DNA of 64,000 nucleotides, from contig JBNJNM010000023.1 in assembly GCA_052426225.1 (NCBI GenBank), positions 992,001 to 1,056,000 on the forward strand, written 5' to 3'. Under the pieces are notes generated by a model. That model saw nothing but the letters and a program-made list of their open reading frames with translations, was not told the origin of the DNA and ran no database searches. The translations under genes and the position numbers were made by a program. Positions 22,772 to 44,896 of the stretch are shown here, in pieces. Position 1 is the stretch's first letter. Each line of letters starts with the position of its first letter. Source of the DNA: Zancudomyces culisetae HAW-14-8 (Eukaryota; Fungi; Kickxellomycota).

Positions 22772-24214
22772 TTATATTATTGCAGCGAGTGGGCTAACAC
22801 CTAAGCTAGGTAGGCTAGAGGTAGAGGTTTCAGTGGATGTAGGGCTTTCACTAGATGTAGAGGTTTCAGTGGATGTAGGGCTTTCACTAGATGTAGAGGT
22901 TTCAGTGGATGTAGGGCTTTCACTAGATGTAGAGGTTTCAGTGGATGTAGGGCTTTCACTAGATGTAGAGGTTTCAGTGGATGTAGGGCTTTCACTAGAT
23001 GTAGAGGTTTCAGTGGATGTAGGGCTTTCACTAGATGTAGTGGCTTCAGTAGATGTAGGGCTTTCAGTAGATGTAGTGGCTTCAGTGGATGTAGAGGATT
23101 GAGCAGATGTAATGGCTTCAGTGGATGTAGAGGATTGAGTAGATGTAATGGCTTCAGTGAATGTAGAGGATTGAGCAGATGTAATGGCTTCAGTGGATGT
23201 AGTAGCTTCAGTGGATGTAGAGGATTGAGCAGATGTAATGGCTTCAGTGGATGTAGAGGATTGAGTAGATGTAATGGCTTCAGTGGATGTAGTAGCTTCA
23301 GTGGATGTAGAGGATTGAGCAGATGTAATGGTTTCAGTAGATGTAGGGCTTTCAGTAGATGTAGTAGCTTCAGTGGATGTAGAGGATTGAGCAGATGTAA
23401 TGGCTTCACTGAATGTAGAGGATTGAGTAGATGTAATGGCTTCAGTGGATGTAGAGGGTTGAGTAGATGTAATGGCTTCAGTGGATGTAGGGGCTTCAGT
23501 GGATGTAGGGGCTTCAGACTCACTTGGTTGACTTTGAGCACTTGAATGGGTAGGACGGTGACGATGGTGCCTACGGTGTCTGCGATGTCTGCGATATCTG
23601 CGACGATGACGATGCGGTGGAGGCGAAGGTGGGGGAGGTGGGGGAGGTGGTGGTCTGTATACTGGTCTACGGATTGGTCTACATGGTCGATGACGATGAC
23701 GACGGTGCCAACATACCCGCTTACACACTCGTTTACATGGTCGATGGCGATGGCGATGAAGATGGCGATGACGACAGCGGTGATGATGGTGACGATGGCG
23801 ATGGAAATGGAGATGGCGATGACGGCAGCGGTGATGATGGTGACGATGGCGATGGCAATGGAGATGACGATGACGATGGTGACAATGACGATGACGATGG
23901 TGACAATGACGATGACGATGACGATGACGATGACAACACTTGAGTTCTACGTATTCTGCGTCATTGCTTGGAAAATAAACGTTATTAAGAGCTACTACAC
24001 CTTTGTTTTTTTTTATGTCTTTTATGTGGTCAAGCTGACCTTGTGGGGATACATTCTTCCCTATACTCTCATCTTTCTCCAAAGTTTTCCCTATAGTCTT
24101 ACTATTCTGTGATGAAAGTTGCTTAACAATCTCGATTTGATTAACCCCATTGCCATAAGAATGTGCGGACACAGAAAAAAGTGCAATGAGATACAGTAAT
24201 TTAAGCTTAGCCAT
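22772..24214 (-). CDS. Secreted His/Arg/Cys-rich protein with poly-Pro hinge and Thr/Ser/Glu mucin-like tail
   Basis: Signal peptide MAKLKLLYLIALFSVSA from ATG 24214; (HR)n/CHH block; poly-Pro run; 6-aa-period repeats such as TSTEAI, TSAQSS and TSSESP. Confidence 0.8.
   Translation of the reverse strand: MAKLKLLYLIALFSVSAHSYGNGVNQIEIVKQLSSQNSKTIGKTLEKDESIGKNVSPQGQLDHIKDIKKNKGVVALNNVYFPSNDAEYVELKCCHRHRHRHRHCHHRHRHCHHRHRHLHCHRHRHHHHRCRHRHLHFHRHRHHHHRCRHRHLHRHRHRPCKRVCKRVCWHRRHRHRPCRPIRRPVYRPPPPPPPPPSPPPHRHRRRYRRHRRHRRHHRHRPTHSSAQSQPSESEAPTSTEAPTSTEAITSTQPSTSTEAITSTQSSTFSEAITSAQSSTSTEATTSTESPTSTETITSAQSSTSTEATTSTEAITSTQSSTSTEAITSAQSSTSTEATTSTEAITSAQSSTFTEAITSTQSSTSTEAITSAQSSTSTEATTSTESPTSTEATTSSESPTSTETSTSSESPTSTETSTSSESPTSTETSTSSESPTSTETSTSSESPTSTETSTSSESPTSTETSTSSLPSLGVSPLAAII
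22820..23517 (-). repeat. Coding minisatellite (18-nt unit; near-perfect 36-nt higher-order unit at about 22820-23040)
   Basis: gtagaggtttcagtggatgtagggctttcactagat repeats about 6 times, followed by variants. Confidence 0.9.
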
Positions 24215-26317
24215 CCTGTGCACTTGGTTTGGCTATTTACTCTTAGTGTTGCTAATACCTTTTATAACCGGGTTCTTGTTAAGCGTGAACTGTAGCTACA
24301 ACAATCCTATGAGCGCCGCAAATAGATGATTTCTATTATATCAGTAGATTTTGACCTGGGGGGCTCAATTTCAAAATATGACGCTGCTAAAATACAACTG
24401 CAATATTTTAACATTTGCTATGGCTTACTATCAAACTGAAGATAAAGTAAATTGATATGAATTACAATCACAGCATGATTCGACACTATTTATATATTTT
24501 CCAGATAGTGGTGTATTTCTACTATCTCTACTTGAATCACACATTAAGAACAAAACTGAAAAATAGAATGATATGTTTATTTTTTGACTAGAATGATATG
24601 GTAATAGCCACAAAATCAACTCAAATTCAGAAAAGGTATTAAACTACAACTTCATATTTCTAAATCATCTGGAAGCATTTAATTATATGTTTACTAGTAT
24701 TTTATTAACTTTACTATACAGAAAATTAATACTTGAACGCTATGATAGGCAAAAAATATAGTTTAACTCAGATACCTATGAATTTTTGACTAGAACCCAT
24801 TTAATATATTCCAAACAATGAAAAAGAAGACAAACTATGTATTTATTCAAGAACTTAATCCTTCATCTAGAGCCAAAAAAATATTATTGAAAAAAACAAT
24901 TTTCACTTTAGAAAATGAAAGGAAAGTAGAGAACTCTAGAAGTAACATAAAGCGAGTGTAACTATATTAATTAGGTTTGTGACAGTTTACATAAAGGTAA
25001 TAGGCCTCCTAGTAAACGTTCAATTGGCATTCAATTAGCAATATTGAAGTACATTTCTAGTAAAGTCAAAAACATATATTAAAGCATGCCAACTTGAACC
25101 TATGATTATTATTTTTTGATTGTCTAGGATCGTCTAGTTACGCTATTTCAAACTTGAACCATTTATTTCCCTCAATGTCGGCTGTCTTTCCTGTGCAAAT
25201 CAATTAGTTGCGCTCCTTCTAACATTTAAAGAATAGATAGCCCACTAGAATTGTATTAGAAAGTATTGCTTTGTACGAGTAGCTAGCATCCTCCATGTTT
25301 CTGTTGGAAGTTTTACTGTTGAACTTAACATTTCTTTCAAATTAAAATTGATTTTAGCCTGGATAGTTGACTACTTGGTTAAAGAGTGAAGTTTACCAAA
25401 AGTATCGGAATACCCTTGCTCAATAACCTTACCTCCACACATTTGTAGTTGTAATAAATGTCAGTACAATATGTCTTAAATATTTTTCAACTTTCAATAC
25501 ATTTTGACCCACCTGGGTCCGTTTTCATTTCTCCGTGCTCCAGAAAGTAATCGTAATAAAGTCTTGATTATTTTTCTATTCTTGGTCATTTAATTTACCC
25601 AATTAATATTGGAACGGAGTATTTTTCTTGGTTAAATTTTTGTTGAAGGTTTGTTAAAACCACGGTAAAACATGTAGTGTTAATGGATTCGTTACAGGCG
25701 TTATTTTGGTTTAATAAAACATTTGTAATAATTATGTTATCGGAGAATAAGTAAGAAACTGGTAAATGCTCCGAAAATAAAAAGATTCGAAAATTTTAAC
25801 CTAGCAACAGCTCCTTAACCCAATAAAATAGTACATTTATGTTTAATATACTCTTTATTTTAACCCGGGAATCCTAGACTATTAGTATATAAAACTAAAA
25901 CATTACGTTATTTTGATTAGTAATATAAATCAGTAAATACCGATTATATATGTACACCATGCCACTATTTCACCGCATAATAACTAGTACTTGTATGTTC
26001 AGCCGAATTTAGGCATATTAAATGAGTATTTTTCTAATAATAGATCTGTTAAATAGTTACAAATACTATTAGGAATCAACATGCGAAAAATTATAGCAGC
26101 AGAGTGTAGCTAGATTTAGTTTTTTTTCTATTACTAAGCTATTTTTAGCATTCGTATATTCAACCGGCATGTAATAAGTGTTTTAGATTTTACACCATAA
26201 TGTATAAAAGGGGTAAAATTTCTTTTAAGATTTATCTTCAATATTTTAACATAATTGAGCAATTCCTTGATTTAAACCATACACTTTAAGCATATTATTC
26301 ATATATTGGAACTAAAC

Positions 26318-26749
26318 ATGGTCAATCTTTTGGTAACAAGTGCATTTTTACTGGCTTCAGGATTTGCAGCTGGCGCAAATATTTCAAGTGTCCAGGTACC
26401 CAACACTAACGGAACCGCTGAAAATTCTGCAAACCACTACAAACGATATGGAGGAGGCGGACCTATCATGAATATTCAAATGTTTAATACATGCTTCTAT
26501 AAAGGCGCAATAGGCTCAATAAAAATACAACCAAATATCTGTTATAACTTGCCAAGTATCAATTCATGTATCCTTGATGGTGGTAATCCTGGTGAAGGTA
26601 AAATCATGTTTTTCACCCAGAATAATTGTATGGGACCAGGAAAAAGCAATCTGAGAAGCCAATGGTTATATCCCGGATGCATGGATGGTGACCTCGGAGG
26701 GCATGCATATTCAGTGCTCTGGCTTGATCCAGTGCCCCAATGTGTCTAA
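26318..26749 (+). CDS. Small secreted Cys-containing protein, crystallin-like family member 1
   Basis: Signal peptide, KR site, motifs FNTCFYKG, PNICYN, FTQNNCMG and SVLW; TATAAAA at 26203. Confidence 0.82.
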   Translation: MVNLLVTSAFLLASGFAAGANISSVQVPNTNGTAENSANHYKRYGGGGPIMNIQMFNTCFYKGAIGSIKIQPNICYNLPSINSCILDGGNPGEGKIMFFTQNNCMGPGKSNLRSQWLYPGCMDGDLGGHAYSVLWLDPVPQCV

Positions 26750-27808
26750 GGTTGTTTAACATTTAAATCATTTTTCAAAATTTGGTATTCTTTTGTTTGT
26801 TAAATAAATAAATAGCAATCATTTTAATTTAACATATAATAAAGACGTTGGAAATAGTAAACAGTATACGTTAAATACCACACCATTACTACTGAAATTC
26901 AGGCGTTGCAATAAAAACAATTGATGATAAAAATTCAATGTACTGCTTTTTATTTAAAGTATCCTGTATTTTCAATCAAGTTAGTTGTAAAATCAATCTA
27001 TGATTATTTTCCTAATAAAGGGATAATCCCATAAAACTCCAATATCAAATCTATGTCAATGTGTGGGATATTAAACCACATAATTAAAGCTTTGATTTTT
27101 TTTATCTACCCAGTCATAAATAAATCTAATCAATAAAAAGCTTACGGGTAGTTACACTTCAAATATGTAAAAACAAAGAGTAATCCAATAGAGGATGTTG
27201 CACGGTTTCTACAAAGTTGTGTAAGTATAAATTTGATCTGAATTAACGGACTTGTAAATCTACAAAGCACCCAACTGGGCAATTGTTCTGAATACAAAAC
27301 ATAATGCACTTTTAGTTTCTCGCACCTCGCCCAGTCTTTCAGATACAGAACGGAGCGCTGCACAGCACCTGTTAGATTCGACATAGAAGGAGCCTATGGG
27401 GGCTACAAATCCATGATGGTAATATAATTCAATTCTCAGTCTTTTACCTAAGCGTTTGAGTCTGTCCTCGTGATCCACCTCATTAAAGTTTGATTCCGAG
27501 ACAAGTTATTAAACTATTGCATATAAATCTTAGTTATGTGCATTTTTTACACTGTGACCAAAAGTTGAGCTAAGTATCAGAGGGTTAGGACTATTGAATT
27601 GATCATTTTCGGGTATTTCCTTTCATTTATTCTACTGCAGTTTAATCTTTGACTTTTAATGGGAATTGATATAGGGATTCTTTAATTCTTGATACTGGAA
27701 AAGTTAAGAATAATAATGGTAAATGAAGGATACTATGTCCAACCTGTGACAGATATATGAAAAAAGTATGAACAAGCGAAACAAAATCGCGAGCTAAAAA
27801 AGCAAGGC

Positions 27809-28634
27809 GTGTCAGTCAGTTCTGTATCACAGCTTAGAAAAAATGTAAAAGCAGCCACGAATACAGCAAAGATAAATAACCGGACAGGAATGAAAAAGAT
27901 AACTCAGAAAAAGAAGGTGGTCAAAACTGAAGACGGGTTATTAGAGATAGATTTGGGTATTTCCAGTTTGCAGGATTTATTTGTTCGAGTAATCGGGAAA
28001 CATATAAAGGATGTCACATCATTTGGAGATATCTCTTCAGATGCCATGAATAAAGTGTGTAGGATTATTAGTAAATATCGGCTTTTGGATAACGACACAC
28101 TTCAGCTCTTCTTAACACCAACGCAGGAACAAAGAACAGACCTAGTGTTGTATGACTGCACAAAAATAGATGCGAATGGGTTATTGAGATTTTATGATTC
28201 TGCTAGTGGAAAACGAATTAAGCGGTTTTTCACTCGTTCATTTGGATTTGGGTGGAGTTTACAATCTTGGTGACAATACTTTAATTTCCATTCTCAGGCA
28301 TTCTAACTCTACAATATTTGAGTCTACACTCTGTAACCAAATTTTAGCAACTAATGGCCTTTCTGCCTTTTCTGGTACTTTTCTTTTCAGTACAGACGAG
28401 GATAATAATAGCAGCAAAGATAAAAATAGCACAGGCACAAACAATTCTCAACTGAAAACACCACCGACAGTTACTCTTCCAACATGCAAAAACCTACACA
28501 CACCAAACCTTTCATTTGTAAGGTCTACTGATCACTCTGCCATACCCACTCTCTTCTCTAATAGTCCTAGCTTATCTACAATGTTTATGAATAGGAAACC
28601 CGAAAGCCATCCCACTAACTTCTTAGTCTGATTG
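27809..28634 (+). pseudogene. RAD7: Degenerate RAD7/rhp7 (NER leucine-rich repeat protein) fragment
   Basis: SLQDLFVRVIGKHIKDVTSFGDI...ISKYRLLDNDTLQLFL...LVLYDCTKI matches Rad7. A frame change near 28190 leads into LRR-like LVHLDLGGVYNLGDNTL. No clear ATG, and most LRRs are missing. Confidence 0.7.
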
Positions 28635-30034
28635 GTCGCGAACCTGGTAGTTTTTAACCGAGATTTATTGTTCTTCCTACCATGTTGGCCATCTATTAAT
28701 ATGTATAGCATTTTATATTTGGTGGGTTTCCGAATTTTAGTTATACCTAATAATGTGTTAATTTATTCAAAATTCCTATACAATATCTTAGATTCCAAAG
28801 TAGTATCCGTAAAAATTAGCGAACAAATCTATTCATTTTGGGGTTTATTGAACTGTGGATATGTTAGGTTTCCAAAGTTGAAATTATTTGATGAAAATGA
28901 TGAAATTCAGTGGAGAATACATTTAATTGTATTTGGATTAAGATTTATAACAATTACAACTATTAGCTTATTTTTTAATTAAAAATTTTTATAAAAATAT
29001 ATAGCATATTGTAATTTAGAACAAGGTTAAAGACTCGGATTTATATAAAATTACTCCAAGCAATTACGACTAGTTGGTATAAAATAACTCGCTTAGTTTG
29101 TTAAAAGTCTGTTGGCTATGCATATTTTGCTTTACAAAATAGCTTAGGTAACATTTGCTAGAAACCAAAAATAGAGCAAATTCTATGATTTTTAACATTA
29201 CTTCACGTAGTCCCATCCCGAGTTTCTATTTTTGTTTATCTTACCAAGGTTCTAATGATATAAAATGACAGTATGAAGAATTTAGTAATCCTGTTCAGTC
29301 GAAACAGTATTCAGAGCAAAATTAGGCTGTTGTTGGTGTTTTTAAAAACGCCACTTACAGTTGAATGCAAGTAAGCAACTGAACTCGATATTATCATATT
29401 AAGCGGAAAGGCTCTTGTTTTAGTATGGCATCACATATTTACTTGATAGAGGTGTTCATCTTTATAACTTATGAGGTTTTGTTATATTATTACTATCTAG
29501 AAATAGAATCAGTAGGTCTACATAAAATTAGACAAATGTGATTGCTATAAGAAATGGGTGATAATGCACTAAAAATATTTAAAATAAGAGGTTGTGTAAG
29601 TCATGGTTAACTATTTGCTAAGATTGGTTCAAATCATTAGATCGGCCAACGGAACAAGTCTTTTTAAATAAAGTGTTAAAGGTCATTACGTTTATGTCAA
29701 TTAGTTACATAATAAACTTTAATATAATGAACTTTTCATCTCTCCGAATCTAAAAAAAGATTTACTTTTCTATACTATTTATATTCACAACTGAAAATAG
29801 AAAGATCTAAATATACACTAAACAGGACTGTAGTTGTTATGGTTAATTATTTTTTAAAAAAGACACGAGAAATGTGTAGGAATTAAAATAAAATTAATAC
29901 AAAGTAGTATATTACAGAAAGTTGTATATAAATCAACGCTATCTACCGATAAACACAATCACAATTCATAGTCATCAATAAATACATCTACTATTAATAC
30001 ATCTTTAACTGCAAAAATAAATTAAAAAATAAAA

Positions 30035-33000
30035 ATGAGACCAAGTGTATATACTGCATCCATATCATTGATAGTAGCTAATCTGCTCTCACCAATAGTG
30101 GGAGCATCCACATCGGCTGGAACTGGAAATGTTAACTGTTCTGATTCGATCAGCCAAATTGAAATTGCACAAGGATCTGGCGATAGTTCAGTTATCAACT
30201 ACAATTGGGATAGCGCTATTGACGTTTCTTGCCCATCCCAGGACTATCTTGTTACATTTGATGTCGATCAAACTTCAGATATATATTTTGCAATTAGCAC
30301 ACAAAAATCTTTGCTTACTGGTGAGGAGGTTATTGAAGGTGTAATCGGTGTAAATACTGGTTCATGGTATGTTGGATCTTCGGTATATGTCGCACAAACA
30401 GATATCGCCTCAGGAGCAGCAGATACTCAAAAAGTATATGTTCAGGTTAGCAGTTCAGGTATTGGAATTGGGTTAGTAGGAAGTAGCAAACCAATTTTGA
30501 CAATTTCATCAGCAGATTATGATGCCAGCGCATTCATTAACTCATATGATGTATGGCTTGCATTCAGTGCCGAGAGGGATTCAGCCAAAATCCAAAATAT
30601 AGAGTATAACTGTAATGATTCTACTTGTGAAAACCCATCATCAACCAGCTCAACACCATCAACTCTATCAACCAGCTCAACCCCATCAACCAGCTCAACA
30701 CCATCAACCCCATCAGCCAGCTCAACTAGTTCAACCAGCTCAACCCCATCAACATCATCAACATCATCAACCTCATCAACCAGCTCAACCCCATCAACCA
30801 GCTCAACCCCATCAACCAGCTCAACCAGCTCAACCAGCTCAACCAGCTCAACCAGCTCAACCAGCTCAACCAGCTCAACCAGCTCAACCAGCTCAACCAG
30901 CTCAACCAGCTCAACCAGCTCAACCAGCTCAACCAGCTCAACCAGCTCAACCAGCTCAACCCCATCAACCAGCTCAACCCCATCAACCAGCTCCACTCCA
31001 TCAACTCCATCAACCAGCTCAACCCCATCAACATCATCAACTCCATCAACCAGCTCAACCCCATCAACCAGCTCAACCCCATCAACCAGCTCAACCCCAT
31101 CAACATCATCAACATCATCAACATCATCAACTAGCTCAACCCCATCAACTCCATCAACCAGCTCCACACCATCAACCAGCTCAACACCATCAACCAGCTC
31201 AACCCCATCAACCCCATCAACTCCATCAACCAGCTCAACCCCATCAACTAGCTCAACCCCATCAACTCCATCAACCAGCTCAACCCCATCAACCAGCTCA
31301 ACCAGCTCAACCAGCTCAACCAGCTCAACCCCATCAACCCCATCAACATCATCAACTCCATCAACCAGCTCAACCAGCTCAACCCCATCAACCAGCTCCA
31401 CTCCATCAACTCCATCAACCAGCTCAACCCCATCAACATCATCAACTCCATCAACCAGCTCAACCCCATCAACCAGCTCAACCCCATCAACCAGCTCAAC
31501 CCCATCAACCAGCTCAACCCCATCAACCAGCTCAACCCCATCAACCAGCTCAACCCCATCAACATCATCAACATCATCAACACCATCAATCAGCTCAACC
31601 CCATCAACTCCATCAACCAGCTCAACTCCATCAACCAGCTCAACACCATCAACCAGCTCAACCCCATCAACATCATCAACTCCATCAACCAGCTCAACCC
31701 CATCAACCAGCTCAACCCCATCAACCAGCTCAACACCATCAACATCATCAACATCATCAACATCATCAACTCCATCAACCAGCTCAACTCCATCAACCAG
31801 CTCAACCCCATCAACCAGCTCAACCCCATCAACCAGCTCAACCAGCTCAACCCCATCAACCAGCTCAACCCCATCAACCAGCTCCACTCCATCAACTCCA
31901 TCAACCAGCTCAACCCCATCAACATCATCAACTCCATCAACCAGCTCAACCCCATCAACCAGCTCAACCCCATCAACCAGCTCAACCCCATCAACCAGCT
32001 CAACCCCATCAACATCATCAACTCCATCAACCAGCTCAACTCCATCAACCAGCTCAACACCATCAACCAGCTCAACACCATCAACCAGCTCAACTCCATC
32101 AACCAGCTCAACACCATCAACCAGCTCAACCCCATCAACCAGCTCCATTCCATCAACTCCATCAACCAGCTCAACCCCATCAACATCATCAACACCATCA
32201 ATCAGCTCAACTTCATCAACCAGCTCAACCCCATCAACCAGCTCCACACCATCAGCATCATCAACACCATCAACCAGCTCAACACCATCAACCAGCTCAA
32301 CTCCATCAACCAGCTCAACCCCATCAACATCATCAACTCCATCAACCAGCTCAACTTCATCAACCAGCTCAACCCCATCAACCAGCTCCACACCATCAGC
32401 ATCATCAACACCATCAACCAGCTCAACACCATCAACCAGCTCAACACCATCAACCAGCTCAACCCCATCAACCAGCTCCATTCCATCAACTCCATCAACC
32501 AGCTCAACCCCATCAACATCATCAACACCATCAATCAGCTCAACTTCATCAACCAGCTCAACCCCATCAACCAGCTCCACACCATCAGCATCATCAACAC
32601 CATCAACCAGCTCAACTCCATCAACCAGCTCAACCCCATCAACATCATCAACTCCATCAACCAGCTCAACCCCATCAACCAGCTCCACACCATCAGCATC
32701 ATCAACACCATCAACCAGCTCAACACCATCAACCAGCTCAACTCCATCAACCAGCTCAACCCCATCAACCAGCTCAACCCCATCAACATCATCAACTCCA
32801 TCAACCAGCTCAACCCCATCAACCAGCTCAACACCATCAACCAGCTCCACTTCATCAACCAGCTCCACACCATCAACATCATCAACACCATCAACCAGCT
32901 CAACTTCATCAACCAGCTCCACACCATCAACATCATCAACACCATCAACCAGCTCAACCAGCTCAACCCCATCAACCAGCTCCACACCATCAACATCATC

Positions 33001-33766
33001 AACACCATCAACCAGCTCAACCCCATCAACATCATCAACTCCATCAACCAGCTCAACTCCATCAACCCCATCAACTCCATCAACCAGCTCAACCAGCTCA
33101 ACCCCATCAACCAGCTCAACTCCATCAACCAGCTCCACTTCATCAACCAGCTCAACCCCATCAACATCATCAACACCATCAACCAGCTCCACTTCATCAA
33201 TACCATCAACTCCATCAACCAGCTCAACCCCATCAACATCATCAACACCATCAACCAGCTCAACCCCATCAACCAGCTCCACACCATCAACCTGTGCTTC
33301 CACCTCTGTCGGTCCTAATTCTATTGTATCATCCACTAGCAAAAACAAAGACTACGATTTTGCGCATGCTCTTACAATTCCATGTGATACAAGCGACTTT
33401 GAGTTTACTGCTAGCGTCTCAACCACATCTGATTTCTTTGTTGCTCTTATGGACAGCGGCGGGTACTACAGTTCTAATGGTGTAATAGAAGCACAATTTG
33501 GTTTATCATCTGGCATCAGTTCCATCAAGAAGGGTAAATACGCTTTGGTTAAACGAAGCAAAGTTTTCACAAGAGCCGACTTACAAGACATCAAGATTGT
33601 TAGCAAGAACTCTCAGCTCCAAATATTTATCAACAATGCGCTCAAGTCCACATATAAGGTTTCCAACTTTAACATGACTTCATTGGCCATGGCATCATTC
33701 AAAGGCACTGCATCAGTTTTCAACTCAACATTCTCTTGCCAGAGTATTTCTAATTGTAGCAACTAG
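30035..33766 (+). CDS. Secreted mucin-like protein: two related Cys-bounded beta-rich domains separated by a ~880-aa (STSSTP)n stalk
   Basis: Signal peptide and an uninterrupted 1243-aa frame. N- and C-domains share C..D...T..V...SD...A...VIE...G...G. No GPI or transmembrane tail. Confidence 0.85.
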   Translation: MRPSVYTASISLIVANLLSPIVGASTSAGTGNVNCSDSISQIEIAQGSGDSSVINYNWDSAIDVSCPSQDYLVTFDVDQTSDIYFAISTQKSLLTGEEVIEGVIGVNTGSWYVGSSVYVAQTDIASGAADTQKVYVQVSSSGIGIGLVGSSKPILTISSADYDASAFINSYDVWLAFSAERDSAKIQNIEYNCNDSTCENPSSTSSTPSTLSTSSTPSTSSTPSTPSASSTSSTSSTPSTSSTSSTSSTSSTPSTSSTPSTSSTSSTSSTSSTSSTSSTSSTSSTSSTSSTSSTSSTSSTSSTSSTSSTPSTSSTPSTSSTPSTPSTSSTPSTSSTPSTSSTPSTSSTPSTSSTPSTSSTSSTSSTSSTPSTPSTSSTPSTSSTPSTSSTPSTPSTPSTSSTPSTSSTPSTPSTSSTPSTSSTSSTSSTSSTPSTPSTSSTPSTSSTSSTPSTSSTPSTPSTSSTPSTSSTPSTSSTPSTSSTPSTSSTPSTSSTPSTSSTPSTSSTPSTSSTSSTPSISSTPSTPSTSSTPSTSSTPSTSSTPSTSSTPSTSSTPSTSSTPSTSSTPSTSSTSSTSSTPSTSSTPSTSSTPSTSSTPSTSSTSSTPSTSSTPSTSSTPSTPSTSSTPSTSSTPSTSSTPSTSSTPSTSSTPSTSSTPSTSSTPSTSSTPSTSSTPSTSSTPSTSSTPSTSSTPSTSSTPSTSSIPSTPSTSSTPSTSSTPSISSTSSTSSTPSTSSTPSASSTPSTSSTPSTSSTPSTSSTPSTSSTPSTSSTSSTSSTPSTSSTPSASSTPSTSSTPSTSSTPSTSSTPSTSSIPSTPSTSSTPSTSSTPSISSTSSTSSTPSTSSTPSASSTPSTSSTPSTSSTPSTSSTPSTSSTPSTSSTPSASSTPSTSSTPSTSSTPSTSSTPSTSSTPSTSSTPSTSSTPSTSSTPSTSSTSSTSSTPSTSSTPSTSSTSSTSSTPSTSSTPSTSSTSSTPSTSSTPSTSSTPSTSSTPSTSSTPSTSSTPSTPSTPSTSSTSSTPSTSSTPSTSSTSSTSSTPSTSSTPSTSSTSSIPSTPSTSSTPSTSSTPSTSSTPSTSSTPSTCASTSVGPNSIVSSTSKNKDYDFAHALTIPCDTSDFEFTASVSTTSDFFVALMDSGGYYSSNGVIEAQFGLSSGISSIKKGKYALVKRSKVFTRADLQDIKIVSKNSQLQIFINNALKSTYKVSNFNMTSLAMASFKGTASVFNSTFSCQSISNCSN
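30635..33292 (+). repeat. Coding minisatellite built from 9-nt units (e.g. accagctca, accccatca, acatcatca)
   Basis: About 2.65 kb of 9/18-nt periodicity, including a pure (accagctca)n run near 30815-30960. Confidence 0.95.
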
Positions 33767-35566
33767 GTTTGTTTAATATTTTTTTTTGGTTACTAGGTTT
33801 TGAAAATTCCACTTTAATAAATTTTAGTAGCAAATCAATTGATTTTCTAATATTCAGCTTATCTACTTATTAGTATACGGAATGCTTCAGACTTTGGAGA
33901 AACAAATATAATTGAATGAAAAATGACGAGATAGAGCATTCAAGAATATATCACAGTATCAACACATTCAAATTCAAGACCAAATCTTATACTGATTGAA
34001 GTACATAAAACTTGAGAGAATGAGTAGTTAGAAATACCTCTTAAACCGGAGTCACATATATGTTTAATACATATTGAAAGAAGAGGCAATCCAAAATTTT
34101 ATCTTTAGTCAAGCTGCGAATAGCAATATTTTTAAATGTAGCCTGTAGAACAAGAATTATTATATGGATCAATTATGAGCATAGATATCATTGATCCAAC
34201 AACCAATGGGCAAGGCTTTCATAGCGGAATAATAAGGTGTTGATTGATAGAGTTAATAAGAGTTATGCCCTGCAAACTTGTGCTTTATTTGCATAGTAAT
34301 TCATTGCTGACAAAGAATAGCCACTGTTGTCCCGTGATGCTAGAACGCATTAAGGCCATATTTTTTGCGTAGTTTCACATTATCTAACAATATTGATGTT
34401 TAAATTGACCTACTAAACTTTTTCAATTTTACTTCATTTATGCTAAAATACTAGGCTAATTGAACCGAAAAATGTGTTTTTTGCATCTCGATAACTCAAA
34501 ATACGTATGTCTTCTCATCATTTATGGTACAGTTTACACTTTTTTTTAAAGTTCTAATTATTAATATAATCAAGCTTAATAGATAAATTATAAGCTATTG
34601 ATATCATCAACATACAAATATGTCGTGTATTCTTCATAGTTTAATGTTGAGTTAAGCCATATCCATTTTTCTGAATATATTTATAACAGAATGAATTTGA
34701 AATTTAATTTGTTAGCTTTGATTATAAAGCGTGTAACTTGCATTGACTGATTGTCTATTAGTATGTCCCCTATATTGGACCGCCGATTAATATTAGAGGA
34801 TGGAGGTAATGGTCGAGACATTATCACTTTGGTTCCGAATTTCAATGTAATTATTTGCTAAAATAAAAAAATCAACACACTTTTTTTCAAAAGAGCAGAA
34901 ATACAGGTGACTCTGTGTTTTGATTCGTTCATGGAATCATGTCTTTTTGTTATATATAATTTTTCTGGTGCACCTATATTAGTGCAACACTTTTTCTATA
35001 TTTAACTCGATTCCAAAAATAATATATCGCCTCTAGAATATTTAATAATGCGTTGTGTGTAAACTATTTCATTTACAAAACTATCTTCCCTAAACGAAGA
35101 ATTTTGTGCAATTTTAATATATAAAATGTATTGCAAATTGAGTACCCGGATTTTAAATCACCATAGTTCTGAAACCGGAGGGTATTGACCGAATAAAAAA
35201 ATCTGTTTGATTGTATTAGATAATAATTATAAAATTTGCTTATATTTTTGTTGGAACTTGTAGGACAGTCAAAAAAGTGTATAACAACAGTTGAACATGA
35301 GTCAACAGAATATCTGAGATAACTCCAAATGCACGTGTGGTTAAAAAATAAAACCATAAGGTGTCAAAATTAGAATACATTTTTCAATATATTTTTTAAT
35401 ACACTCGCTCTAGTATCACCTAAATATAGTTCAAAGTGTAGAATAACAGAATTTTTGTACCATTCTAAAATTAGATTGTTAAATGAACCATTAAAAATGA
35501 AATAAGGTCGTCGGTTTAACACTGTATTAAGAACACTGTAAAAGGTGAACTAGGATGAGGGAAAGG

Positions 35567-35573
35567 TATAAAA
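35567..35573 (+). promoter_or_regulatory. TATA box (GTATAAAA context) of Tyr/Gly peptide gene 1
   Basis: TATAAAA lies 150 nt upstream of the ATG; equivalent elements lie upstream of 44896 (near 45050) and 50030 (near 50180) on the minus strand. Confidence 0.6.
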
Positions 35574-35716
35574 GATTCAAAATATCGTTGACAAAAAGAA
35601 AAATCATCAACTATTGAAGTTTCTTCAAGTATAATCCAAATTAAAAGCATAGTCATTATAATTTATAATAAGTGCATTAGCTACATACAACGCTCATTTT
35701 ATACTAAATATCAAAA

Positions 35717-36175
35717 ATGGTAAAGTCAACACTCGCACTCCTCACAGCCACAGTTGCCACAGTATCAGTAAATGCTGCAGTTGCCCCAAGACCAAGAGCA
35801 AATGTTGGTCCTATGCAACCACCAATGGGACAAGTCCAGGACTTTGGAAGATATGCTCCACCATCTCGCCCTGCATTTAACAGACGCTTTGCTACACCAG
35901 CCTACCGCAAACGTGCTGACGAAGAGGAAGATGCCCCAGCAGAAAATGCTAGCGCAACTACTGATGCCACCCAAACTGCTGATGCTGTTACATCTGATGA
36001 CAGCTCTGCGCTAACTGTTGATGGTTCAGCAGATGGAAACAGTACAGGAAATGGAACTGATGACCGTTGGTGGTGGGGGGGATACTACGGGTACCCATAT
36101 TACGGCGGATACTACGGCTATGGCTATGGCTACGGATACCCATACTATGGCGGATATTACGGATACTACTGGTAA
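35717..36175 (+). CDS. Secreted precursor of a Tyr/Gly/Trp-rich peptide, copy 1
   Basis: Signal peptide; basic Pro-rich segment ending RKR; acidic spacer ending GNGTDDR; C-terminal WWWGGYYGYPYYGGYYGYGYGYGYPYYGGYYGYYW. Paralog at 44474-44896. Confidence 0.9.
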   Translation: MVKSTLALLTATVATVSVNAAVAPRPRANVGPMQPPMGQVQDFGRYAPPSRPAFNRRFATPAYRKRADEEEDAPAENASATTDATQTADAVTSDDSSALTVDGSADGNSTGNGTDDRWWWGGYYGYPYYGGYYGYGYGYGYPYYGGYYGYYW

Positions 36176-37825
36176 TTTGTCACATCCGAATCTCATCTTA
36201 TTCCATTTGTTCCTATAACATCGAGTTTGTAGGATTTAATTTTATTTAATTTTGTTTAAATAAAATATCCGGTAAATTTATACTAGAGGTTCAGATCCTA
36301 CCCATGTATATCAGTCAGATCCTAATCAACATTTGAATTTAAAGCAAAGTCGTAGTTTGTAGTTTAAAAATTATCCTACATTCGGATTTATCAATAATAT
36401 TTAAGCTATTAGTATCTGTAAAGAAAGAATTAATAACTTGTATCGACTGAGTATAAAACTTACTTTGAACGAGCTTTAAGTGTGTATGAGACATTAAAAT
36501 GATAAAGATATAATTGTTATTCATTTTTCTAAAGAATTATTTACCTTTGAACTATAAATATTTACATACTCGATTTGGCAATGTAGTTTTTAATTTTGAA
36601 TTATATACATAAGGTTAGTGTGCATGGAGCAACTTTATTCAAACTTGACGCTTTATCCAAACGTTAGATTATTTTACATTTAAATTACTTTTTTGAATAG
36701 TAAAGCATGGGCACGTGTTCTAAATAATTTATATAATTTTTGATAAATATCATTTCTTTCCAACATACGTGGTTTAAACGGTAAATACCATATCAATATA
36801 AAAAAGTAAAAATATATTATAACAAGAAGTGTCCATTTAAACCTAGTGAATGAATATTGGGTCTTATTGAGATATTCTTGAAAAATATACATGGCTAATT
36901 TTAAAAATCAAGCGTTTACTGTATACGTACTACTACAGTCGTTTTTTCTACATACCAAAATTCCTTCTGATCTAATAGTGAGATTAAGAAATTGCCCTAA
37001 GGTACCCTGTTTGACGTTATAATGATTAATTTTTCTTATCTGAAAGTCGTTTAATACACCAGAAAAATAGTATCTTGAAATCACTAAAATACCAAGGTAT
37101 ATCGAGAGGTTTCTTAGTGGTAATAACTTTATACGTGCAGGGTTTGAGTAGCTGGTAGAAGCAGATGGCATATGTGTAACCTACGCACATTTGTAAGCTT
37201 TTTTGATTTTAGGGAGAGTTTGTAAGCAGATTTCTCTAGTCTAGTCTGGTCAAGTATCTTGTGTTCTATGATATAAGATCTAAATAACACAATTACTTGG
37301 TAAACTATATTCTTGCTGGAAACTAAAATATTACCAAATGAATTCCATGTTATTTATTATGATAACAACCAAAAATAGGAATAAATTTCCAATCACAAAA
37401 TAAAGAAAATATTCAGATCAAAAATCTTAAAAAATTTATAATGGAATAAGAATAGAAAAAGTGTTTAATAATATCAGTATATTTAATATAGCTAAAAATT
37501 ATTTAATTGACCAAGGAAAATGAGACTGGCTATGTGGACGACTACAAACTTATTATGAAGTAATAACGGATATAATAAACATTTATAGGTAAGTTTTATA
37601 ATAGTTTTAACTGTACCAAATAGCAATATCAAAAGCAGGAAAAATTTCATTAGGAGTCTCTTTAACTCTTTTGGTGATTATAAAGAATATTGTAAACAAG
37701 GAATCTGCTTAAAAAAATGTTGATTAAAGAATTACAGGCTATAAGGATAATGTCGTGTGGATCCCGATACATAAATTGATTCAACAATTTCAAATAATAT
37801 TTAAATTACTTATTAAACAATCAAC

Positions 37826-38224: not shown

Positions 38225-39106
38225 ATGAGTCAAAATGCAAACGTTACAGTTGAAGTTTTGCAACAGATTTTGGAGAGATTATCAGCTCTTGAAAAACAAA
38301 CCGCACCAAATGATCACATGTCAGTATCAGAAATCAGTGATTCAGCAAACATCACTGCTCCATCAATCGTTGATGCAGTCGACGATGATTCAGTTGAAAA
38401 CTTCGTGGTTGCCAGACCAACACCATCAGACCTGGTCATGTATCCAAAACTGCAAAAGGCGCTACCAACAGTTGAACAGGATTTCTTTTGGACACCACTG
38501 GCAGATGTCGAACGCAAGAAGTTTTACGCAGCCATCCCAAGAAACTCTGGCATGGATTATGAACCACCAGAGGAAAACATCAAGTTATCAGGTGACAATA
38601 AACGTACTGATGCGATGTTATATGACATCCAGTACCGTTTATCAGCCGTTACAAGACCTTTGGATTACTTCATGCACGAAGCAATCCGTGACGGAGGTGC
38701 AGTCAGTGCCGAAAAACTTGCAGTTTTTATCAACTCAATCAGAGTTTTACTTGCGGATGTTGCATCCAATATCACGCAACAAAGAATCAAACTGTCGTAC
38801 AAAGCCTCAGGAGTACCATCAGATCCTCCAGAAATGGTTTCAACATCAAGGAAGCCTCTCGTGGACATACAGCAGATGCTCGAAGTTAAAGCAGCTGCAA
38901 ATACATTGCAGCGTGCAACAAAAAATGTGCAGCAGAGAAGACCAAGATTCAACGCAACCAGGACCTTCCCAAGCATTCCGTTTCAGCCATCAGTTAACCA
39001 GAATGTTCAAGCAGAGCCGCAGCAGATCCAACAACAACGACAACACAAATCCGCTGCTACTGGCGGTAATTTTCGGTTTGCAAACAGCAGCAAACACCGA
39101 AAGTAG
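38225..39106 (+). CDS. DIRS gag-like ORF1
   Basis: First ORF after the left ITR; D..LYDIQYRLSAVTRPLD segment and Gln-rich tail; directly precedes the VGGRL start of pol. Confidence 0.78.
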   Translation: MSQNANVTVEVLQQILERLSALEKQTAPNDHMSVSEISDSANITAPSIVDAVDDDSVENFVVARPTPSDLVMYPKLQKALPTVEQDFFWTPLADVERKKFYAAIPRNSGMDYEPPEENIKLSGDNKRTDAMLYDIQYRLSAVTRPLDYFMHEAIRDGGAVSAEKLAVFINSIRVLLADVASNITQQRIKLSYKASGVPSDPPEMVSTSRKPLVDIQQMLEVKAAANTLQRATKNVQQRRPRFNATRTFPSIPFQPSVNQNVQAEPQQIQQQRQHKSAATGGNFRFANSSKHRK

Positions 39107-39120
39107 GAGGGAGACTGAGG

Positions 39121-40950
39121 ATGTTCCAGGAGGCTTGGATGCGCCTCACAGATCACAAATGGATACTCCAAGTGATCTCAGAAGGGTTCAGAATCCCCTT
39201 CAAAACGCATCCACCGACGGTCAAGCAGAAAAAACCGTTAGGTTACAACTTGAAAAAGCTTCCAGAAAAAGTGGTCGAACAGGAGATAGCAAACCTTCTG
39301 TCAAAGAAAGCAATAGAGGAAGCTTCATCCGCGCAGCCAGGGTTCTACTCAAATCCGTTTACAATCCCAAAGAAGAACGGAGGCACGCGGATGGTACTGA
39401 ATTTAAGACCTTTAAATCAGTACATCCCACAGCGACATTTCAAGATGGAGTCGCTCACAACTATCTCCAGAATGATCCGCAAAGGGGATTATATGACCAG
39501 CATAGACCTCAGCGATGCATTTCTACACGTATTGATCAACAAAACGTCCAGAAAGTATCTCAGGTTTACATGGGGCGGTCGCACCTACCAGTACAGGGTG
39601 CTCCCATTTGGTCTATCTTTAAGCCCACTAGTATTCACAAAAACACTAAAACCAGTACTGAAATGGGCCAGAGCTCGCGGGATACGAATGTCGAGCTACT
39701 TAGACGATTTGTTAATCTTAGGATCAACAAAAACAGAGTGTCTAAAGTTCACAAACATGGTATCCAAGAAACTGGTGAAACTGGGATTCCTGATCAACCA
39801 GGAAAAGTCATCAATACATCCCAAACAATGTATTACGCATCTTGGGATGGACATCAACAGCCGTCAGATGAGTTTCAAGATACCCAAACAGAAACTCAAA
39901 GATTTAGCGAGAGAGGCATCCAGGTTGATACACAAAGGGCCTACAACACTGAAGGATCTGGCATCATTCATTAGCAAAACGCAGGCAGTGAATATAGCAC
40001 TCAGACCAGGACGACTGATGAGCAGGAAGTTGTTAGAGCTCAAAAACAACACTCTGAAACGCACCACGGATTGGAGATCACCGGTAACATTGAATCAGCC
40101 CGCACTGGACAATCTGACGTGGTGGAGGGACCATCTGAAGCAATGGAATGGTCTATGCTTCCTTCCGGAGATCTCAGAGATAGAAGTATATACGGATGCA
40201 AGCGACAATCACTGGGGAATAGTGATAGACAGCAATCAGTATACGGGGACATGGACACGACAACAGATGAAGCTCCTTATCAATGCGAAGGAATTATTAG
40301 CAATCCAGTATGCAGTGAAGCTGCCGCAGGTTCAGGGAAAGAGTATTGTTGTATATTGCGACAACAACACTTCAATCAGCTACATCAAGAAGCATGGGGG
40401 AACCAAATCAGTGAATCTGATGGACATTTCGGAAGCAATTTGGAAACATTGCATCAGCAATGGCACTCGGGTTCAGATTCAGTATGTGCCATCAATACTG
40501 AATCCAGCGGATGCACCATCACGTTTAACAGCTCAAACAGAGTGGTCACTATCAGACAAGATGTTTTAGAAGATACAGAAACAGTTTGGTCCACACGATG
40601 TGGACATGTTTGCCAACAACAACAACCACAAACTACCAACATTTGTGAGTTGGAAATTGACACCAGAAGCAGCGAAAACGAATGCATTCAATCATCATTG
40701 GAGCATTTGGACGAATCCATACCTTTGTTCACCATGGAATCTGATACAGAAAACATTACAGAAGATCAGCCAGGACAAAGTATCAGCGACATTGATAACA
40801 CTGTTTTGGAGGTCAGCACCATGGTATCCAGACCTCAAGAGCATGCTAATAGCTCCACCGATCAAGATATTAGCTCCACAGATAATTCCGGATCCAAAAA
40901 GCGGAAAGCAAGTGACACAGATAAACAAAACATGGTCGCTTACGGCTTGA
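39121..40950 (+). pseudogene. DIRS pol: RT + RNase H + N6-adenine methyltransferase-like domain, interrupted by TAG at 40567-40569
   Basis: RT motifs SIDLSDAFLH, LPFGLSLSP, YLDD; RNase H motifs YTDAS, INAKEL, CDN, NPADAPSR; methyltransferase-like DMFA...NAF...PWNLI. The second copy has Gln at the stop position. Confidence 0.9.
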
Positions 40951-41913
40951 AAATTAAGCGCGCACGCCTTGAAAAAACGGGTTTAAAAGATTCAGTTATC
41001 ACGTTAATGACAACTGGTAAACGAAATATGGCAAAACAAAAACAATATTACAACATCAAGGTAAAGTTTATTAAGTGGTTAGAGTCTGCAAAACTTGATA
41101 TTAATAACGTTTCAGTTGTTGATGTTATCAATTTCCTTGATGAACATCGTATTAGTAACAATTTAAAAGTTGGTACTATAAAAAACTACAAGTCTGCTAT
41201 CATCGATATTAATGCTGAATGGCGAACATTTAGCAGCGATATTTTGATGATTGATTATTTAAAACAGCTCGATTCAACTTCAGTTCGATCTTTTAACAAC
41301 CCTAACTACGATATTAATCCGATTATCGAACATATTAAAAATTTTGGTTCAAATTTTAAAATGAGCAAGCAAAATTTAACAATTAAATTTTGTTGGTTGC
41401 TAGCAATTTGTGGATTTTTGAGACCTTCTGACATTGAACGAATCGATGATTCAAAGACGGAAATCAATAAAGATTATGTTAAATTTGTTATTGTTGGACC
41501 AAAAGAAAAGCGAAGTGGAAATCCGATTGAAAAGGTCAGTATAATCCACACACATAGCGACTATAAATTATGTCCTGTAGTAACATAGAGCATATAAAAA
41601 ACGCATTGCAACTTTTCCGAGTGTTGCAAACCATCCGATCCTCGATGGAGTACAATTGCACTACCTTATCCGCAACTTAAAGTATAACGACAAACACATT
41701 GGGGCACAACGAATCAGTAAACATATTAATTCATTGATGTCACTCTTGCAGTTGCCAGAAAGCGCAAAGTTACCAAAAGCTCGAGCATTAGGATCTACTA
41801 GAGCTACAAAGCTAGGTGCGACATACGACGATGTTATTGCACAAGGATTTTGGGCAAGTAAAGGTATATTTGATACTTATTATCAATTATCACGTAAACT
41901 CGTGAAAATTTAA
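40071..41913 (+). pseudogene. DIRS tyrosine recombinase, frameshifted near 41585
   Basis: GFLRPSDIERID, PKEKR and LCPV, then in another frame PKARALGSTRA and GFWASKGIFDTYY. Confidence 0.88.
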
Positions 41914-42036: not shown

Positions 42037-42068
42037 CCCACCCAATTCCCACCCATACCTAGCTCAAC

Positions 42069-42390
42069 GATGGTAAAGATTCATCAGGAAACAGGGGACA
42101 TCAGTTTATATATGGTTTAAATTTATTTTATTTAGTTAGTTTTACTTATTTTATAAAAATTATACAGTGATGTCTGTCATTACACACATCATTACGTATA
42201 AAGTTTCTAAATTTAAACACTCTTTTTATCGATTTAATTTTTTACCAAATTTTAAGGTAATGGATTAATCGATAAAAATAGTATCTAGGAAAGAATTTTC
42301 GATTTATAATAAAGATTGGTACACACATAATTTTATCTGGATGTTCGCATAATAATAATAAGTTTTCATTTCATTCAACTAAACATATTA
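42069..42390 (-). repeat. Right inverted terminal repeat of the DIRS element
   Basis: Reverse complement of 37826-38147. Confidence 0.93.
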
Positions 42391-42567
42391 TAATAATCAC
42401 TAGAAATACAATTGGCTAATAATTCAGAAAGGTGATCTCACTACCTTACTTTATTGATTTTTTATTAAAAAACTTTTTACTTCAGCCAACTAAACACATT
42501 ATCTATCATACTAAAATATCTCTTATCTAAAATAAAACAATTAACTAAAACGGTTATGCTTGACCTT

Positions 42568-43011
42568 TTAATGAAATGGAGCAATCCAAACGTAAGATAC
42601 TGCCGGACGACCTTGTAGTTCTTTAAATAAATTTATAACTCGGCCTGCTTTACCCACTTTCTCATCGATACATTTACCCGCACAAAAATAATCACTACAG
42701 TACTTCATGAATCCTCTTTTTTCATTGATGCCATCCATTCTTACAGAACGAAACCCAGGTCCATTGTAGCATTTGTTTGGTATGGCATAGAGAGTGTCTT
42801 TAGGATAGTCAAAGTTACTGGAGTTAGATGGTTCAAGTTTCAACATTCTGGGTATGTGTTCGTGGCTGCATTCACAGTGCATGTTGTTAAACTTGGCTTT
42901 TGGAAAACCATTTTCATCAGATGCAAGATTATATTGGTTTTGAGTATTTTCAATACTGTAAGCAAGAGCCGAGCCAAGTACTAAGATACTGAGGATTGTT
43001 GGTTTAAACAT
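42568..43011 (-). CDS. Small secreted Cys-containing protein, crystallin-like family member 2
   Basis: Signal peptide MFKPTILSILVLGSALA; motifs PNKCYN, RGFMKYCSDYFCAGKC and SYVW. Confidence 0.82.
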   Translation of the reverse strand: MFKPTILSILVLGSALAYSIENTQNQYNLASDENGFPKAKFNNMHCECSHEHIPRMLKLEPSNSSNFDYPKDTLYAIPNKCYNGPGFRSVRMDGINEKRGFMKYCSDYFCAGKCIDEKVGKAGRVINLFKELQGRPAVSYVWIAPFH

Positions 43012-44473
43012 TTTTATTCTCAAGTGATTGTTTTTTACTATTATAGTTTGGATTATAGAGTTTATAGTGAAATAGTTGTAGGTTTCTATATATTTAGAAG
43101 TTAATAGGCTTTTTATACTTTTTTTTGTAATCGAAAGGTATGTTTTGAGATTATTTTATAAAGATGCGAATATCTCCAGTATTCTAGAGTTAGTTTTTAT
43201 ATGACCATTTTTAAATTATCTAAAGCTAATATTTTATTAAAGCGGGGATAAAATAATATCAACTAGATCCAGACTAATACTCAGAATAAACAGTTTTAAA
43301 TTTTAATAACTAAAATAGGATTGTAAAGAAAATAAATAATATATTACTCTAGATTTATTGATATAGGATTAAATCCCAAGTTTGTAAGCAAAATATTGAT
43401 AATTATTCATTTTTTTTACCACAAATGGTTTTAAGTTTAAAAAATATTACTTTTTGTTTATTCTACGCGTTATGCTTCTAGACTTTAATAACAAAGACAA
43501 AATTCTCTTTTTAGATTATAGTATAAATTAAATCATTGGGTGAAATGAATTCTCAATCAATTTCATAAAACCAAAATATTTATCACAAACTGGAAATTCC
43601 CAATTTTCTACAAATTATGTTTAAATTTGAAAAAATATATTACTTAGGTTAAAAAATAATATTCAGGAAGAGAAATTCCAGATATTCGCAATTTCTTAAT
43701 CCCACGGATAGGTCAGGAGGAATGTTGGTATGCAGAGAAAACGACTGTAGAGGTGTGTGTACAGTAAATACCAGGTTTTTACAAACTGGTATGTGGGATT
43801 TCCCAGAAGATCTCAAGTCTGGTCCACTTTCAATTAAATGGGTGTCAATGGGTACTGCCCCCAACGAATAATCTTTAATACTCCTTTATAAGAAACAATA
43901 AATCACTTTAGAGTCAAGTTTAGTGAATGAAAATATTATTTTTCTAGCCTTAGAAAGCTAAGATTAATTAAAGTATTAATCTTTGCATAAATAAATTACA
44001 ATATTCTACTTTAAAACTAGGCCAAAATGATCCACAAACATTAGTATTTACATATATTTTAGTTGATAGTATAATTTAATGTCACAACAAGTACACAAAC
44101 ATTAAAAAGATAGTAGGTAAAAAATTTCTTAAAACATAACATGAAAAGTCTGTTTCCACAAGTCTAGAGACAGCATACTCACTGGTAATTGATCAGATGA
44201 TGTATTTTCTGCCTTAGGTAGATCAAAGGCGATTACCTTAATAAACTATGTGTACTTTACCAATGGTAATATTACTAATTTAGTTAACGGAATAAATTAG
44301 ATACTGGTAATTTAATTGCTATTTTTCTAATTCAGAATTTGTATTCGATTCATGCAGCAATTTATGTATCTTCATGTATGTTGTATTATACAATTTATTT
44401 AAATAATATATAAAGACCGTTAGAATTAGTTAAAGTAACGACTAAAACCAATAAAGTTTTAAAGAATGGCAAG

Positions 44474-44896
44474 TTAGTAGTAGTATCCACCGTAGTATGG
44501 GTAGCTGTAACCGTAACCGTAACCGTAACCGTAGCCATACGATGGATATCCGTAGTATCCGCCATAGTATGGGTATCCATAATTTCCATACCACCAACGG
44601 TCATCAGTTCCATTTCCTGCATCACCACCTTCTGCTGAAGGATCAACAGTTTGAGCAGAATCGTCGTCAGCTGGTGCAACTTCCTCCTCCTCGTCAGCAC
44701 GCTTGCGGTAGGCTGGTGTAGCAAAGCGGTTGTTAAAAGCAGGGCGAGATGGTGGAGCATATCTTCCAAAGTCCTGAACCTGTTCCATTAGTGATTGCAT
44801 AGGTCCGACATTTGCTCTTGGTCTTGAGGCGGATGCAGCATTTACTGATACTGTGGCAACTGCGGCTGTGAAGAGTGCGAGTGTTGGCTTTACCAT
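44474..44896 (-). CDS. Secreted precursor of a Tyr/Gly/Trp-rich peptide, copy 2
   Basis: N-terminal 70 aa nearly identical to 35717; RKR site, GNGTDDR, then WWYGNYGYPYYGGYYGYPSYGYGYGYGYGYSYPYYGGYYY. Confidence 0.9.
   Translation of the reverse strand: MVKPTLALFTAAVATVSVNAASASRPRANVGPMQSLMEQVQDFGRYAPPSRPAFNNRFATPAYRKRADEEEEVAPADDDSAQTVDPSAEGGDAGNGTDDRWWYGNYGYPYYGGYYGYPSYGYGYGYGYGYSYPYYGGYYY

Follow-up and report, generated by a model that had tools for sequence, protein, structure and literature searches.

The Saccharomyces FLO, Candida glabrata EPA and Pneumocystis MSG genes form multigene families at chromosome ends that are copied between ends and include many pseudogenes, and in their products a binding-type domain at the N-terminus is carried by a stalk of Ser/Thr-rich repeats whose length varies. 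Small secreted precursors are known from other systems. Mussel foot protein 3 (Mfp-3) is a small, secreted, Gly/Tyr/Trp-rich product of many polymorphic gene copies in an organism that also secretes tyrosinases; KEPs such as the Rep1 repellents of Ustilago maydis combine a signal peptide and dibasic kexin sites with small peptide products, and the Rep1 peptides assemble on the wall and assist attachment; and quinone-tanned Gly/Tyr- and His/Tyr-rich precursors make up the sclerotised extracellular material of the schistosome eggshell (with tyrosinase) and of insect chorion and cuticle. Here, we analyzed a stretch of 64,000 nucleotides from the fungus Zancudomyces culisetae HAW-14-8 (contig JBNJNM010000023.1, hereafter C23, positions 992,001-1,056,000 of the forward strand), which we call the window and in whose numbering positions are given, and within it the span 22772-44896, which encodes two Tyr/Gly peptide precursors, a His/Arg/Cys-rich protein and a large two-headed mucin. 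The preliminary description of this DNA saw in these four genes a candidate adhesive or holdfast toolkit. Our analysis indicates that the span probably holds the right-subtelomere members of fast-evolving multigene families of secreted or surface proteins, which have become adjacent through block copying, and it gives no indication that selection put together an adhesive cluster.

Z. culisetae is a Harpellales fungus of the larval hindgut of mosquitoes and black flies whose spores release a glue (PMC5954228), so the guess that the DNA came from an arthropod-gut fungus with a secreted holdfast was right. The chemistry of this glue is not known, and the sole proposal in that work is a fasciclin-domain protein (PMC5954228). 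The published PacBio HiFi assembly of strain HAW-14-8 (PMC12611240) comprises 25 contigs and 27.09 Mb; C23 is 1,070,474 bp long and terminates in TTAGGG repeats, which places the span 34-56 kb from the right-end telomere. All four open reading frames (ORFs) lie where the preliminary description had put them and have the compositions that it gave (Table 1), and the products carry signal peptides, from which an extracellular location is predicted.

The evidence that decides how the locus should be read is its position in the genome. Loci of the three families were counted by six-frame search, which gives lower bounds, and enrichment was calculated over the 14 contigs with such loci, which together make up most of the genome; of their sequence, 7.2% lies within 70 kb of a contig end. 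Within this distance we found 24 of the 32 Tyr/Gly loci (binomial p 2e-21), 12 of the 16 His-rich loci (p 3e-11) and 10 of the 26 mucin-head loci (p 7e-6). From position 27684 to the telomere the window is colinear with the terminal 50 kb at the right end of C13 (C13:2000703-2062245) at 88-98% identity, the matching blocks being 27684-37745, 43687-54406 and more out to the telomere repeats, and the boundary of the duplication falls just distal to the His-rich gene. The colinearity is broken between the inverted Tyr/Gly genes, where C23 has a DIRS element without counterpart in the C13 duplicate and C13 has a different 19-kb insert. Four chromosome ends were compared for their gene mix, namely the window end, C13-right, C23-left and C15-left, and the other three carry the same mix as the window. 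At all four, a fragment of a small secreted protein gene of a crystallin-like family follows a Tyr/Gly gene by about 1 kb; at C23-left and C15-left an intact His-rich gene lies about 3 kb further on, 3-4 kb from the Tyr/Gly gene; and at seven ends (C7-R, C8-R, C9-L, C14-R, C21-L, C21-R and distal C23-R) a His-rich pseudogene or fragment is found 6-14 kb from an intact Tyr/Gly gene. Thus, the families are neighbors because chromosome ends are built from copied blocks that carry them. Given the end enrichment and the C13 duplication, the adjacency does not go beyond genome architecture, and since His-rich copies have decayed, the partners are not all intact at each recurrence. The clustering on which the toolkit had been founded does not hold up as a sign of joint function: all three families are end-enriched, the span's distal part duplicates the right end of C13 and the mix recurs as copied blocks, so that subtelomeric residence and block duplication explain the recurrent co-location, which is therefore no evidence for a dedicated toolkit. 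Caution is advisable when functional clusters are deduced from proximity in subtelomeres.

Table 1. Features of the window discussed in the text
Feature	Position	Strand	Details
His/Arg/Cys-rich secreted protein, 480 residues	22772-24214	-	basic block 23552-23941; acidic S/T/E tail 22775-23551
Two-headed mucin, 1243 residues	30035-33766	+	N head 30035-30634; S/T/P stalk 30635-33289; C head 33290-33766
Tyr/Gly precursor A, 152 residues	35717-36175	+	tail encoded at 36068-36172; 99% identical twin at C13:2007825
Tyr/Gly precursor B, 140 residues	44474-44896	-	tail encoded at 44477-44596
Small secreted Cys protein, crystallin-like family	26306-26749	+	family alignment; AlphaFold2 model
Small secreted Cys protein, crystallin-like family	42568-43023	-	family alignment
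Small secreted Cys gene fragment	36881-37084	-	lies downstream of a Tyr/Gly gene by about 1 kb; the three other ends compared show this too
Small secreted Cys gene fragment	43680-43868	+	downstream of Tyr/Gly precursor B
Further member of crystallin-like family	48032-48484	+	
Further member of crystallin-like family	49671-50030	-	
Further member of crystallin-like family	52518-52940	+	
Further member of crystallin-like family	61545-61952	-	
DIRS-type retroelement	38225-41913	+	gag-like ORF, reverse transcriptase/RNase H ORF and further overlapping ORF; RVT_1 E 4e-27 plus RNase H; between two inverted Tyr/Gly units

The Tyr/Gly precursors A and B are paralogs (70% identical) with a common layout: after the signal peptide comes a conserved pro-region closed by RKR, then an acidic spacer with DDR at its end, and lastly a tail of 35-40 residues that is about 50% Tyr and 30% Gly. 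The whole-genome search found 32 loci of this family, 30 of them intact, and all 30 intact genes share the signal peptide, pro-region, acidic spacer, DDR and aromatic tail. RKR is common to most; one copy has QKR, and two divergent members (L058 and L059) are without a dibasic site. The acidic spacer frequently bears an N-G-T or N-E-T sequon. Every length difference among the intact paralogs is in frame, and the ratio of nonsynonymous to synonymous differences (pN/pS) pooled over the first 75 codons, that is, the signal and pro-region (prepro), is 0.39; together with the intactness of the genes, these features indicate that the frames are genuine and that the genes look functional. The tail is not a pure DNA microsatellite because synonymous codons are mixed, and its codon choice (TAC 74%, CCA 100% of Pro, GGG 3%) is like that of enolase and unlike that of the low-expression PIKK gene of the window, which may be taken as a weak sign of high expression. 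One gene (C11:463208; L003:1501-1941(-), also L029) is non-subtelomeric and adjoins enolase and phosphofructokinase, and its protein is 100% identical between HAW-14-8 and strain COL-18-3; two members of the family are identical between these strains. A look-up of transcript-derived contigs for one member returned only the older genome assembly. Among the paralogs, L048:221-787(-) (C8:81424) is the only one with two RKR-spacer-tail modules, and L058:301-708(+) and L059:264-695(-) have a very long Glu/Asp spacer and a tail of just 10 residues with Trp at both ends.

An exhaustive HMMER search of 1.84 billion representative proteins with a prepro-plus-spacer profile gave four matches, all from Z. 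culisetae, and no relative of the prepro outside this species; a search by ESM Atlas features with the precursor retrieved only a sub-threshold oomycete glycine-rich cluster (0.83). By these sequence comparisons and those described below for the mucin heads, both families appear to have relatives only in Z. culisetae. With Mfp-3 the Tyr/Gly proteins share small, secreted Tyr/Gly-rich products containing Trp (signal peptide, tails of 30-40 residues), many polymorphic gene copies and the presence of secreted tyrosinases in the same organism. They differ in that the tails are far richer in Tyr (52%) and nearly without the cationic Arg/Lys/Asn complement typical of Mfp-3, which is interspersed with Tyr or DOPA (3,4-dihydroxyphenylalanine) in the mussel protein: the pooled tails (721 residues) consist of Y 51.5%, G 27.5%, P 7.9%, W 6.0% and S 4.4%, with R 1.2%, K 0.3% and H 0.4%. 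There is no homology to Mfp-3, the peptide here forms the C-terminal tail of a precursor in which a kexin site and an acidic spacer precede it, and DOPA is only putative. With KEPs the family has in common the signal peptide, dibasic kexin site and small peptide product, but each window gene encodes one module where KEPs have many KR-separated repeats, only the paralog L048 having two, and the Tyr/Gly composition is without counterpart in the KEP survey (PMC7329392). The combination of Tyr/Gly-rich and His-rich secreted precursors with secreted tyrosinases recalls the quinone-tanned systems; those are animal systems without homology to the present proteins, in which cross-linking is putative.

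The mucin has a stalk of 885 residues (S 52%, T 32%, P 15%) encoded by about 150 copies of an 18-nt DNA repeat, and its two heads show weak homology to each other (22% identity, E 5e-7). The protein ends in the second head, without an anchor signal. The family comprises at least 26 loci with open frames of 318-2407 residues and up to three heads per protein, and stalk length varies, from 885 residues in the window to about 100 in a short C12 paralog that carries both heads. At C6:56940-58874, C12:1129101-1131035, C9:1165904-1169353 and C6:79312-82665, we observed giant open frames of 1750-2407 residues with two or three tandem heads of the mucin type, and in another paralog (L026:1501-2646; G000:C14:353707-354852) a His/Tyr/Asn-rich tail of about 35 residues stands in place of the second head. 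Neither the heads nor the N domain of the His-rich protein matched a Pfam family at E <=0.1, the known ligand-binding domains of adhesins included. A word-based protein search gave no match to the head inside the full-length mucin, and with a 437-residue paralog as query it returned Z. culisetae proteins only. An AlphaFold2 model of the N head, built on an 11-row alignment, is all-beta, with a mean predicted local distance difference test score (pLDDT) of 78 and a predicted template modeling score of 0.77. It superposes on the C-domain of a GH32-type levanase (9h8i) with Z 12.9 (139 residues, 3.3 A), on galectin-9 with Z 12.1, on CBM66 with 11.8 and on legume-lectin-like domains with about 11; the Foldseek E value was 4e-6, and ESM Atlas matches at TM 0.65-0.68 included an arthropod Methyltransf_FA cluster. 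On the strength of the model, the heads are concanavalin-A-like lectin/glucanase fold domains whose sugar binding is putative. Both heads share this fold (Z 12-13) with a superfamily that includes galectins, the GH32 C-terminal domain, CBM66 and Methyltransf_FA, but identity to it is just 5-13% and there is no Pfam match; none of the known sugar-binding residues is identifiable in the heads. As in the FLO, EPA and ALS families, the mucin family has a Ser/Thr-rich repeat stalk of variable length, and like FLO, EPA and MSG proteins the window mucin sets a binding-type domain at the N-terminus of this stalk. The difference is that the window families have no sequence relation to FLO, EPA or MSG and no PA14, GLEYA or Flo11 domain in Pfam searches, that they were found only in Z. 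culisetae, and that in the mucin a second head takes the place of the glycosylphosphatidylinositol (GPI) anchor of those families.

In the His-rich protein the signal peptide precedes an N domain of 91 residues; next come a basic block of 130 residues (H 34%, R 33%, P 13%, C 8%; isoelectric point 12, charge about +49) and an S/T/E tail of 259 residues (isoelectric point 4.1) encoded by 19.5 copies of a 36-nt repeat. The C-terminus is a conserved hydrophobic motif that, at about 10 residues, is shorter than usual GPI signals. Six of the 16 loci of the family are intact and ten have stops or are fragmentary. Five intact paralogs are built alike, with a signal peptide and N domain (about 75 residues) followed in turn by period-4 Cys/basic repeats of the CRHK, CRPI or HRHR types, a poly-Pro run (9 to >50), a second His block, a short acidic T/E/P segment and the hydrophobic C-terminal motif; the repeat units differ between paralogs and the composition is kept.

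The genome supplies candidate machinery for processing and oxidation outside the window. It has one kexin-type P-domain gene and nine tyrosinase matches, with a signal peptide in six of the six full ORFs inspected; tyrosinase enrichment is a general trait of Zoopagomycota (PMC10079182). The tyrosinases show no linkage to the families: only one of the nine is less than 70 kb from a contig end (39 kb, on C10), and another is 79 kb away from the left end of C23. There are two multicopper oxidase loci, neither nearby, and no match to an animal-type peroxidase in the genome. Of the enzymes that the preliminary description proposed to look for in the genome, tyrosinases with signal peptides are therefore present (at least six) and animal-type peroxidases gave no match; its remark that the window contains no tyrosinase, laccase or peroxidase agrees with our search, which found no tyrosinase, multicopper oxidase or animal-type peroxidase match there.

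From these parts a sequence of events can be proposed. The Tyr/Gly precursors would enter the secretory pathway, and the single kexin would cut after RKR to give an acidic, probably N-glycosylated spacer joined to a tail of 30-40 residues (about 52% Tyr, 28% Gly, 8% Pro and 6% Trp), which could then be freed between the conserved DDR and the following W. The tails may self-associate via their aromatic residues and are a plausible tyrosinase substrate, which would lead to DOPA/quinone cross-links and an insoluble extracellular material in the wall, the spore wall or the cement of the holdfast. In this scheme the two-headed mucin, long and heavily O-glycosylated, would serve as a bivalent linker of lectin-like character, and the His/Arg/Cys proteins would be polycations of the surface with thiol- and metal-binding properties. 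A cross-linked wall, spore or holdfast material is plausible given how extreme the Tyr content is, and given the kexin site, the tyrosinases with signal peptides and the bivalent mucins with lectin-fold heads. The adhesive part of the preliminary description has thus kept its footing in the organism, the signal peptides, the tyrosinases and kexin, and the lectin-fold heads, and has lost the argument from clustering.

That the span reflects block copying in a subtelomere has to be set against several observations that speak for more than architecture. Fungal adhesin families are typically subtelomeric, so subtelomeric residence is compatible with co-function. Away from chromosome ends, a mucin head lies 6 kb from an intact His-rich gene at C12:1.095-1.101 Mb, and a degenerate Tyr/Gly locus lies 2.6 kb from a mucin head at C12:1.742 Mb. 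The paralog in which a mucin head with its stalk runs on into a His/Tyr/Asn-rich tail hints that these modules may be functionally linked. Moreover, the function of every product is derived from composition and fold, and cleavage at RKR and after DDR is predicted. The reading of the preliminary description would be that the four genes are a dedicated, co-expressed toolkit for a holdfast or spore appendage, in which Tyr peptides (DOPA or dityrosine), a His-metal protein and mucin stalks are kept together by their joint function. Such a toolkit would fit a host that makes a secreted holdfast of unknown chemistry (PMC5954228), secreted tyrosinases in the genome, the lectin-like fold of the heads, the mucin head joined to a His/Tyr-rich tail, and the spacing of 3-4 kb between a Tyr/Gly gene and an intact His-rich gene at both C23-left and C15-left. 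We nevertheless regard it as quite unlikely, as subtelomere enrichment and block duplication account for the co-location, the His-rich partner is decayed at 10 of its 16 loci while Tyr/Gly genes are intact, and Tyr/Gly genes occur with no His-rich or mucin neighbor at C10:15824, C8:37144, C8:54208 and C11:463208 (beside enolase). In addition, unrelated secreted genes equal the toolkit genes in number within the span, no oxidase is in the window, and the Tyr/Gly prepro was undetected in any other holdfast-making Harpellales represented among the 1.84 billion proteins. In another proposal, which we consider rather unlikely, the Tyr/Gly family of about 30 genes would encode the cement of the trichomycete holdfast, with half-Tyr peptides released by kexin, cured by secreted tyrosinases into a DOPA/quinone glue and bridged to the gut cuticle by the two-headed lectin-like mucins.

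Other readings concern the Tyr/Gly genes or the ORFs as such. The genes could encode diffusible peptides, either antimicrobial or competitive ones aimed at gut microbes or signaling ones, that form a subtelomeric arsenal with the crystallin-like proteins. Conserved signal and pro-regions with a variable mature part and many paralogs are the pattern of toxins and antimicrobial peptides, Gly/Tyr-rich antimicrobial peptides occur in nematodes, the genes are interleaved with those of crystallin-like small proteins, and two members have a 10-residue tail that is aromatic at both ends. However, the tails carry hardly any charge (R 1.2%, K 0.3%), are aromatic to an extreme degree and are more likely insoluble than diffusible, and the conservation of their composition and length is the opposite of what hypervariable mature toxins show; any such activity is hypothetical, and we judge this reading unlikely. 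Precursors of Tyr-cross-linked cyclic peptides of the dikaritin type, a class of peptides that are made on the ribosome and modified after translation, would likewise combine a Kex2 site and a Tyr-rich core with tyrosinases encoded in the genome, and ustiloxin and phomopsin require tyrosinase (PMC7329392). In the Z. culisetae genome no UstYa/DUF3328 (PF11807) domain was matched, in a search that is unvalidated since the control genomes were negative too; each precursor has a single tail of 30-40 residues where dikaritin precursors have many short cores, and no tyrosinase is adjacent. This reading, which is very improbable, was rejected on the UstYa result of that unvalidated search and on the one long tail per precursor. 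It is just as hard to believe that the ORFs have no function and are a by-product of simple repeats in subtelomeric DNA undergoing decay. The stalks and tails do arise from tandem repeats in which other frames are open as well, and many His-rich copies are pseudogenes, but 30 Tyr/Gly genes are intact with in-frame indels only, mix synonymous codons and have a pN/pS of 0.39, two strains of different provenance share some identical copies, and the mucin heads fold with good model confidence.

Besides the four genes, the span contains the DIRS retroelement and genes for two small secreted Cys proteins, along with two gene fragments of the latter family. An alignment of the small Cys proteins shows invariant Cys, Tyr, Asn, Gly, Ser and Trp positions in the pattern C-Y-N..S..G..C.G..S.W. 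In the AlphaFold2 model (core pLDDT about 80) the best PDB matches are all beta/gamma-crystallin domains and weak (E 0.016-0.5, target TM about 0.6), and the family is present again at the other subtelomeres examined. The member at 49671-50030(-) has a signal peptide near-identical to that of the Tyr/Gly family (MVKSTLALL...VNA), which suggests a 5'-end exchange between the two families. A second DIRS-type copy lies at 55828-58500(-), its reverse transcriptase/RNase H sharing 77% amino acid identity with the copy in the span, and a Dam-like methyltransferase match follows its RNase H. A secreted Cys-rich protein of 179 residues at 46170-46709(+) has a 99% identical copy at the C13 right end and no Pfam match. 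A SUN-family wall glucosidase, which suits a fungal origin, is also encoded in the window. A Pfam scan of all secreted window ORFs gave no match, and neither did an Rfam scan of the window.

For the biology of Z. culisetae, this analysis provides testable candidates for the spore glue, namely about 30 precursors of half-tyrosine peptides, a set of secreted tyrosinases and a large family of two-headed mucins with a predicted lectin fold. If the Tyr/Gly family does form the cement, the fungus would have invented it in convergence with the adhesive proteins of mussels. The chromosome-end organization of these families, as in yeast adhesin families, suggests that the fungal surface diversifies rapidly within the gut of the host.

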